64,000 nt of DNA. Source: Guillardia theta CCMP2712 (taxonomy: Eukaryota > Protista > Cryptophyta). Below the pieces are notes generated by a model. The model was not told where the DNA came from and searched no databases. It saw only the letters and a list, made by a program, of their open reading frames with translations. The stretch covers positions 120,584 through 184,583 of the forward strand of contig NW_005434612.1 of the NCBI RefSeq assembly GCF_000315625.1. The letters run 5' to 3'. Shown here piece by piece: positions 10,776 through 12,830 of the stretch. Both the position numbers and the translations under genes were made by a program. How positions within the stretch are numbered: the first letter of the stretch is position 1; each line of letters starts with the position of its first letter.

Positions 10776-12679
10776 ATGGGGAAAAGGAAAAGAGGAAAAC
10801 AAAGAAAGTCTTGTTCTGATTCACAGACGACTGTCAAGATGTGTTTGAAAAAACATCTCAAACAACACACAATGATCGGTGTGATTGATGATTGGGTGAA
10901 ACACATAAGCAAAATAAGCCATCGAGGTAGCATCATCTTCAATCATCTATTGTTATGGTGTTTTGAGAAGGATTCAAGGCAAGGTGATGATACGTACATT
11001 ACAAGGCTGTTTGATCAGATATACAATCGTACTAGAAAAGTAACAGACAAAGAAAAAGAAGAAGGGATGCAAGAAGAAACGGTCAAGACCAATGGTGGAG
11101 AGAAAGTTTTCTTTCGGACCTGTTTTCTGATGGGTGAAAAACGCAGAGGTAATGCAATTCAGTTTGATATTTTAGACGATATCTACCAATACAACGCAGG
11201 AAAGAAGGGGATATTCGAGTACTGTACTATTCTGCTGATCAATATGCAACAAATTTCCAAAATTACATATTCTATACGATGGGACAAAAACAGACTAGAT
11301 ACATAAAGGAATGGGGAAAGCTCAATGGGATTTCTTCAGAAAAGGAGATACAGGATATACGGAATACAGTAAACGGATGGAGCTTTCCACCAAAAACTCG
11401 TGTTCTCGAAAGACAGGATGTCATTGATTTCATAAGGGAACAAAAAGAGATCATTGGATGGGACAATCATTATAACTTGTCATGGGCCCGTGACAAAATC
11501 AAGAAAAACCCTGAACAGCAAAAATGGATGCAATTACACATGCCAAATCTTGTCAAGTACCATTTTTCGGTTCTGAGGTTTTTGGAGATTCATGATATAT
11601 CTGGTCGATACACGATCGCTCCGATTTTTCAGATACGCAAACAATTTATTCGCGTAGACATTTGGCGTTTATTCTACATTATGGATCAATCTGGTCTGTT
11701 GCAATATTCAAAGGGTGGGAAAAGCAAATGCATGAAAAAGTTCATACAACAAAAGCATAAGCGATTCTTGTCGGTGTTGAAGCTACAATCAAATTTGAGA
11801 AAGAAAGGGACAGTTGATAGCATACAGACTGACGGAGTCGCACTCTGTGTGACGTTCAAGAAGAGAATACACAATGAGACAGACAATACTACTACAAAGA
11901 AAAGCAAAACAAGAGATTGTGATGTGTCCTCAAGACGAGTTATTGCAATCGATCCTGGTCGCAATGTACTGATATGCGGTGTCGAGCAAATACCTGGTCA
12001 AGAAAAACCAAAGCAGTATCGATATACTCGAAGGCAGTACTATCATGAGTCTCATATTACTCAGAATAACGCCAAGTTAGAAAAATGGAGACAATGCATA
12101 ACAGAAGAATCAAACGATATTGCAAGAGTGTCAGCAAAAACGTCTCGGTTGGATCACTTTGAAAGATACATCGACACCGTGGTGAGACTAAGCGAGATCC
12201 TGTTCGAACACAATTGTCAAAACAAGTTCGCACGCCTGAAGATGGATAACTACATCCACAAACACAAGGCGATTGATACGTTCTTCAAGAAGATGAAAGG
12301 TAATGGTTCAGATCAAAATCCAATAATTGCATACGGTGATGCATCATTCGGTTGTACTGGGCGTGGAGAGAAGTCAGTGCCTGTAAAATGGATCAAAAGG
12401 CGATGTCAGAACTTCTTCGAGGTGACGGCAGTTGATGAATACAGAACAACAAAATGTTGCAATCAATGTCATCAAGAATTGTATGATTTGAGACGCAAAC
12501 AAATCAACAAGAATGGTATACTTGCTGACGAAGTGTCAGTGGTGCGGGGTTTGAAATGGTGCAGATCCACCAATTGTGTTCAAAACCGTATCAAGTCTCG
12601 TGATGTCAATGCTGCTATGAATATTCTATTGTGCTACATGTCTCTACCAGCACGACCAGATTTTCTGAAACGGCCTTGA
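10776..12679 (+). pseudogene. Fanzor: Fanzor1-type (eukaryotic TnpB-like) RNA-guided DNA endonuclease, ~630 aa, split by one frameshift near 11168-11200
   Basis: RuvC-I VIAIDPG (D at 11951). IIAYGDASF has Gly at the canonical RuvC-II position, with the rearranged catalytic Glu in VDEYRTTKCC (E at 12437). Zn finger CNQC...CRSTNC. RuvC-III SRDVNAAMNI (D at 12602). N-terminal VKMCLKKHL...SHRGSIIFN is in ORF 10776. The second frame is open from 11168 and reads GDIRVLYYSADQYATNFQNYI before the annotated ATG. Confidence 0.88.
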
Positions 12680-12680
12680 A

Positions 12681-12830
12681 TCACACATGGGTCTGGTTAT
12701 ACTTCAACCTGTTCTTCATAGAAAGGATGAAGTACGAGTCAGACACAAGGAAATATTGGCGTGTGGGTCTTCCATGATCCATAATTTCGACGGAAAATTT
12801 AGAATTTTGAAATTTTATGTTTTGTGTCGT
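12681..12830 (+). ncRNA. Candidate Fanzor omegaRNA scaffold
   Basis: Directly 3' of the Fanzor stop. Long hairpin at 12691-12744 (gtctg/cagac, tacttca/tgaagta, cct/agg, ttct/agaa), enclosing pair tcacac/gtgtgg (12681-12686 with 12761-12766), small hairpin gggtc/gatcc, and AT-rich stems (aaaatt/aatttt, ataatttc/gaaattttat). Position matches where TnpB/Fanzor omegaRNAs are encoded. Confidence 0.6.

Follow-up and report, generated by a model that had tools for sequence, protein, structure and literature searches.

An apparently recent pseudogene copy of a divergent Fanzor1 element in Guillardia theta

Within a window of 64,000 nucleotides of genomic DNA from the cryptophyte Guillardia theta, the plus-strand segment from about 10445 to 12841 is very probably one copy of a small multi-copy element whose sole gene encodes a Fanzor1. 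Fanzors are the eukaryotic descendants of the bacterial RNA-guided nuclease TnpB. The assignment of the gene to the Fanzor1 family is right as judged from a sequence profile and a predicted fold, and the copy in the window appears to be a recently formed pseudogene, selection maintaining the rest of the family. The element is a distinct Fanzor1 lineage within the known family and not a new kind of system, and its novelty is that of one more divergent member.

Family assignment and active site of the encoded protein

The segment carries two plus-strand open reading frames (ORFs) that lie in different frames, at 10776-11306 (176 aa) and 11279-12679 (466 aa). Using a word search, we found a 642-aa protein, P0001, encoded on an ENA metagenome contig, which is 99% identical to the 466-aa ORF across all 466 residues (P0001 residues 177-642). 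Aligned with this protein, the gene in the window consists of two parts. The first coding part (10776..11179, plus strand; codons 1-134 plus 2 nt) matches P0001 up to residue 134 and encodes a K/R-rich, NLS-like N-terminus, GKRKRGKQRK (10779-10808), together with the first WED strand (residues 17-23) and the first REC helices (from residue 32) of the AlphaFold model. The second part (11180..12679, plus strand; codons 144-642 plus stop) continues in a different frame, where the listed ORF has its first ATG at 11279, and encodes the remainder of the REC domain, the WED and RuvC domains and the zinc-finger TNB domain. A length of about 630 aa had been reconstructed in the original prediction, which is close to the 642 aa of the intact relative. 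The AT-richer, intronless island described there was also recovered by measurement. The GC content in windows was 0.387 at 11001-12000 and 0.438 at 12001-13000 versus 0.65-0.67 at 13001-16000, so that the island of about 39-44% GC is flanked by host genes of about 65% GC, and since the sibling copies of the gene are single ORFs, it needs no intron.

Pairwise phmmer searches of the PDB with the 466-aa ORF and with P0001 gave no useful match, and Fanzor1 proteins were detected only with a family profile. A profile built from 18 relatives matched SpuFz1, the Fanzor1 of Spizellomyces punctatus (PDB 8gkh), with E=5.5e-37 over profile positions 5-588 of 596, followed by PpFz1 (1.5e-31) and GtFz1 (1.6e-30), and then by Cas12g at an E of about 0.02. 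An AlphaFold model of P0001, built on the same alignment of 18 relatives, reached a pLDDT of 86.3 and a pTM of 0.83. When this model was compared with the PDB using Foldseek, the best seven matches were all Fanzor1 structures (SpuFz1, TM 0.70/0.75), and Cas12f, TnpB and Fanzor2 ranked after them with TM values of at most 0.35. Both the profile and the fold comparison thus indicate full-length homology to Fanzor1 through the WED, REC, RuvC and TNB domains, which bears out the earlier claim of a Fanzor1 locus. The Cas12f1-like TNB zinc finger of Pfam (PF07282) was matched by the window protein with E=1.6e-4 and 22.2 bits, under the cutoff of 26.3 bits; the same model was matched by 13 of the 18 family members, with a best E of 1.8e-10. 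NCBIfam gave no match for the window protein. Among named relatives, the best match comes from the cryptophyte Hanusia phi (P0003; 41% identity).

The residues of the predicted active site were examined in the 18-sequence family alignment. The RuvC-I aspartate D401 (GAT at 11951..11953, in AIDPGRN) and the relocated catalytic glutamate E563 (GAA at 12437..12439, in VDEYRTT) occupy invariant columns and align with D383 and E541 of SpuFz1, and the RuvC-III aspartate D618 (GAT at 12602..12604, in SRDVNAA), in a column at least 90% conserved, aligns with D606. In SpuFz1, D383, E541 and D606 are the catalytic metal-binding residues (PMC10432273). In Fanzors, the canonical RuvC-II glutamate is replaced by proline or glycine and an alternative glutamate lies downstream (PMC10530073). 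The window gene encodes this arrangement completely, all codons lying on the plus strand: the canonical position holds the glycine G529 (GGT at 12335..12337, in IIAYGDASF), which is invariant and aligns with the glycine of the SpuFz1 motif VVMGD, while E563 stands just upstream of the zinc finger. The zinc finger itself retains its four cysteines, C570, C573, C604 and C609, in a CxxC...CxxxxC pattern (12458..12577). The acidic residues named in the original prediction therefore proved exact in their coordinates, at 11951, 12437 and 12602, and the rearranged RuvC-II that it described, with YGDASF at the canonical position and the glutamate of VDEYRTT beside the zinc finger, is present in both of its parts.

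Among the characterised proteins, SpuFz1 (PDB 8GKH, 9CEU-9CEZ) is the best whole-length match to the window family in both profile and fold. The two have in common the Asp/Glu/Asp triad, the glutamate just before the zinc finger, the glycine at the old RuvC-II position and a length of about 640 aa. However, only about 16% of the residues are identical when the structures are aligned, no pairwise phmmer match was obtained, and the window element lacks inverted ends, whereas inverted repeats of 30 nt and a 5'-CATA TAM are known for the elements of SpuFz1 (PMC10432273). GtFz1 (PDB 9CER-9CET), the known Fanzor1 of G. theta, is another member of the family found in a cryptophyte and was reported from a locus likewise devoid of inverted repeats and transposase (PMC10432273), but it represents a different lineage: it is matched at the level of the profile only (E=1.6e-30), its fold match is weaker (TM 0.52/0.54), and its third catalytic residue is asparagine (PMC11423790), in contrast to Asp618 of the window family and the aspartate of SpuFz1. 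The possible orthology to GtFz1 that had been raised is not upheld by these comparisons, in which no pairwise match was obtained and SpuFz1 is the nearer protein. Nor does anything connect the window element to the TTAA TAM of GtFz1, which had been brought up with it; neither this TAM nor the published GtFz1 omegaRNA scaffold is transferable to the window element. Four peptide motifs of the window protein were absent from the supplements of Saito 2023 in the possibly incomplete text available, and the G. theta locus file of that study covers two scaffolds, the window locus not being among them.

TnpB is the evolutionary ancestor of Fanzor. The TnpB of IS200/IS605 elements (ISDra2; PDB 8H1J) resembles the window family in its RuvC and zinc-finger core and, by analogy, would do so in its 3'-encoded guide RNA and its TAM logic. 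It differs in its weak fold match to the P0001 model (TM 0.22/0.35), its canonical RuvC-II glutamate, its much smaller REC domain and its prokaryotic host. Of the several thousand Fanzor genes catalogued so far, a few have been tested. To these the window locus adds a divergent lineage, about 16% identical to the closest protein of solved structure, with the canonical Asp triad and a tail of 162 nt.

The 25-bp deletion and the sibling copies

A broken ORF was implied in the original prediction, and the break is real; its site, left unlocated there, is a frameshifting deletion of 25 bp between 11179 and 11180 (plus strand), identified by DNA alignment with two sibling copies, L001 and L075. The frame shifts at this loss after 11179, so that the locus holds no intact ORF, and the out-of-frame read-through stops at 11304-11306. 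P0002 and P0003, the latter from Hanusia phi, both conserve the missing codons (EFWQEKGNK), so that the window carries a deletion and the sibling no insertion. The 25 bp lie in the REC-domain part of the gene, and their loss would leave a 176-aa N-terminal fragment and at best, in addition, an N-terminally truncated product of 466 aa. Such a product would be devoid of residues 1-176, and with them of the NLS-like N-terminus, the first WED strand and the first REC helices. The absent residues include a REC loop whose counterpart in the alignment with GtFz1 contains R85, and mutation of R85 in GtFz1 abolishes cleavage (PMC11423790). As far as can be judged from the sequence, the window copy is a pseudogene, neither of its ORFs alone being able to make the nuclease.

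To place this copy among its relatives, we gathered seven copies of the element, namely the window copy, L001, L075, L073, L074, L003 and L002. L001, L075 and L073, all on metagenome contigs, contain intact ORFs of 642 aa, and L074 is open to the end of its contig's coverage. The remaining copies are broken, the window copy by its 25-bp deletion, L003 by a 2-nt insertion and L002 by deletions at the 3' end. Because L003 and L002 were broken independently, the decay of single copies appears to be normal in this Fanzor family. Six of the copies form two groups, one of the window copy, L001 and L075 and the other of L073, L074 and L003. The dS between the groups is 0.13-0.15 and the dN/dS 0.26-0.30, indicating that the protein is under purifying selection while single copies break now and then. 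Since the dS between the window copy and its intact siblings is only 0.010-0.016, the break in the window is recent. These results suggest that the window locus is a recent pseudogene of a Fanzor1 family that selection otherwise maintains. The building of a consensus ORF from genomic copies, which had been suggested, is unnecessary, as L001, L075 and L073 provide natural intact versions, and these could be tried as a compact nuclease. The biological interest of the locus is modest, the window copy itself being by all appearance inactive.

The sibling copies on contigs of two metagenome projects (L001 and L075 from ENA; L003 and L074 from JGI) show 93-98% nucleotide identity to the window element and 94-99% identity within the coding sequence. 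In addition, eight sequencing runs (X6-X13) from freshwater, lake-water, runoff and aquatic metagenomes contain 24-53% of the exact 31-mers of the element.

Element ends, mobile relatives and the 3' tail

The right end of the element was located at 12841..12842 (plus strand), after ...GCTAATAA. Five copies (window, L001, L075, L074 and L003) are alike up to 12841 and unrelated beyond it, indicating that the right end is fixed and that the five copies lie in different insertion contexts. The left part of the element, at its 5' end, contains a tandem repeat of about 121 bp (10445..10632, plus strand), with two units in the window and three in L001, as defined by alignment of the window with L001; a 26-mer of the unit occurs in the window only at 10484 and 10605. 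The left end can be placed only approximately, near 10445-10484, the homology between the window and L001 stopping at different points inside a tandem unit, and this placement rests on two copies with 5' flank, which differ within the tandem repeat. The tandem units upstream of the Fanzor gene are candidates for a promoter or a left-end remnant. Between them and the gene lie a C/T-rich tract and a 5' leader (10633..10775, plus strand); homology with L001 and L075 runs through this region, and because the sibling copies have it too, we consider it part of the element. The span first assigned to the locus, 10776-12830, does contain the gene, but the element is larger, with a left end near 10445-10484 and a right end at 12841.

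Neither terminal repeats of the element nor a transposase were detected in the window. Comparison of the 5' region with the 3' end of the element for terminal inverted or direct repeats yielded only chance or low-complexity matches of 8-10 nt, a tblastn search of the window with the IS630/Tc1 transposase of the related locus L069 gave a best E of 0.14, no recognisable target-site duplication was found in the window, and no further copies of the element ends occur elsewhere in it. Since the element has neither a transposase nor inverted ends, it would have to have been copied in trans or by another route. It is another Fanzor element without a visible transposase, and as such bears on the copying of these elements and on their role in the host.

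Some relatives present a different arrangement. In L069/L070 (34% identical) and about a dozen of the loci gathered with a 6-sequence alignment (21-30%), a DDE_3 (IS630/Tc1) transposase gene adjoins the Fanzor gene, mostly upstream and divergently read, and inverted ends of 23-31 nt frame the pair in all three of the loci examined for them (L069, with 31 nt, L023 and L014). The Fanzor1s of these IS630/Tc1-mariner elements belong to the same protein clade as that of the window and align with it over the full length at 24-35% identity, and they too stand at the right end of their element, followed by a short conserved structured tail; the window element differs from them in having neither the divergent transposase nor the inverted ends. 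Complete IS630/Tc1-type transposons containing DDE_3 and a divergent Fanzor1 were delimited at L069:5-2857, L023:1849-4777 and L014:1010-3932. The right ends of L023 and L014 terminate in ...GCTGTA, as do the aligned right ends of this group. Of the loci gathered with the 6-sequence alignment, seven are on contigs classed as viral in IMG/VR, including two named giant-virus MAGs. An association of Fanzor1 with Mariner/Tc1 elements and the presence of Fanzors in large viruses have been published (PMC10530073).

The gene ends with a stop codon at 12677-12679 and is followed, up to the right end, by a non-coding tail of 162 nt (12680..12841, plus strand), which is a candidate omegaRNA scaffold. 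The tail is predicted to fold stably, with z = -4.70 relative to shuffled controls for 12677-12841 and -4.33 for 12600-12841, a stretch that takes in the final 80 nt of the gene. L003, a member of the other sub-lineage, retains the long hairpin that lies at 12686-12749 in the window. When the two sub-lineages are compared, 8 of the 162 positions of the tail differ, against a synonymous divergence of 0.136 (binomial p = 3e-4), and because the tail changes less than synonymous sites do, it is under a constraint of its own. Among the close copies there are no compensatory base-pair changes, the variation being too small for a judgement. In the transposon-borne relatives, some of which are on giant-virus contigs, the tail ends at the end of the transposon, and a consensus fold of the sequence between that end and a point some 55 nt upstream of the stop codon contains eight pairs with compensatory double changes. 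Rfam gave only sub-threshold chance matches on 10567-13000. The fold and the constraint together make a role of the tail as omegaRNA scaffold plausible, and the scaffold may already start within the final 80 coding nucleotides. The layout of the tail agrees with that of published Fanzor1 omegaRNAs, which are encoded at the 3' end of the locus, with the sequence just 3' of the scaffold as the guide (PMC10432273). In these scaffolds a first stem-loop is conserved and the part after it varies, and the omegaRNA of GtFz1 overlaps the last 17 codons of its gene. Several small sequencing runs, probably transcriptomes, contain 20-40% of the words of the gene plus tail, a weak hint that some member of the Fanzor family is transcribed.

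Some further features were observed in the tails of the relatives. In L006, L009, L013-L015, L017, L018 and L023, a stem-loop (columns 24-95 of their alignment) takes in roughly 55 nt at the end of the Fanzor ORF and 15 nt directly past the stop codon. Several of its pairs show compensatory changes, which makes it a good candidate first stem for the omegaRNAs of these relatives. The tail of the second sub-lineage has a 13-nt insertion with a small perfect hairpin, UAGGC-GGU-AGCCUA (L074, about 1940-1955; L003, 2067-2080), and L003 additionally has no counterpart of the next 34 nt or so after the insertion.

On the basis of the characterised SpuFz1, GtFz1 and PpFz1, we infer that the intact siblings would perform RNA-guided cutting. 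The intact protein of 642 aa most likely forms a complex with an RNA that comprises the 3' portion of the gene together with the 162-nt tail, the host sequence just past the right end would serve as the guide, and the site formed by D401, E563 and D618 would cut matching double-stranded DNA next to a TAM. As the guide of TnpB and Fanzor directly follows the scaffold, that of the window copy would start at 12842, with the host flank at 12842..12862 (plus strand) as a putative guide by this analogy. Since near-identical copies without transposase and inverted ends nevertheless occur at different sites and in aquatic metagenomes, the lineage might propagate by homing, in which its own nuclease makes an RNA-guided cut and copy repair then fills the site, and might pass from one cryptophyte to another, perhaps via giant viruses, on whose contigs relatives of it occur; we regard this as a speculative and rather improbable route.

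Alternative readings and neighbouring genes

The window locus might be read as still functional, the 25-bp gap being an error of assembly or consensus, or the 466-aa ORF from 11279 encoding a shortened but active nuclease. This ORF is indeed open, 99% identical to an intact sibling and in possession of the full triad and the zinc finger, and at a dS of 0.010-0.016 to the intact siblings the break is very recent. However, a clean loss of 25 bp is atypical of base-calling error, the truncated product would have to work without residues 1-176, including the NLS-like N-terminus, WED strand 17-23 and the REC loop aligned with R85, and two other copies were broken independently, L003 by its 2-nt insertion and L002 by its 3' deletions. 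We consider a functional locus quite unlikely and retain the reading of the window copy as a pseudogene. A different question is raised by the tail, which might be only an mRNA 3' UTR or an end needed for copying, in a true Fanzor1 family whose function may be other than RNA-guided cleavage. The close copies show no covariation, the conservation of the tail could equally reflect transposition signals, and the published GtFz1, NlovFz2 and MmeFz2 loci, which also have no inverted repeats or transposase, have a biological role that is open (PMC10432273). On the other hand, all Fanzor1s tested to date have their omegaRNA at the 3' end of the locus, the fold of the tail is far more stable than that of shuffled sequences (z = -4.7), the compensatory changes of the relatives lie at the same position relative to the stop codon, and the catalytic site has been maintained under purifying selection, so that this reading, too, seems unlikely and an omegaRNA scaffold remains the preferred interpretation of the tail.

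The absence of a transposase, of terminal inverted repeats and of a recognisable target-site duplication in the window would also fit a Fanzor gene that is not mobile at all, being a domesticated host gene or a segmental duplicate. Such an origin is hard to reconcile with the exact right end common to five copies with unrelated flanks, with the independent decay of copies, with a base composition strongly unlike that of the adjoining host genes and with the position of relatives at 24-35% identity within IS630/Tc1 transposons, one of which, L069, has 31-nt inverted ends. We regard it as most unlikely, and a multi-copy, probably mobile element remains by far the better description of the locus.

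Two host genes in the vicinity of the element were also recorded. The gene at 13002-16259 (plus strand) encodes a U-box and a protein kinase domain together with long armadillo repeats, and as it begins 160 bp beyond the right end, the element occupies the upstream region of this gene. Further downstream, 17790-38912 (plus strand) is one uninterrupted ORF of 7040 aa with many EML-type tandem beta-propellers, HELP motifs and WD40 repeats, a giant host gene that is apparently intronless.
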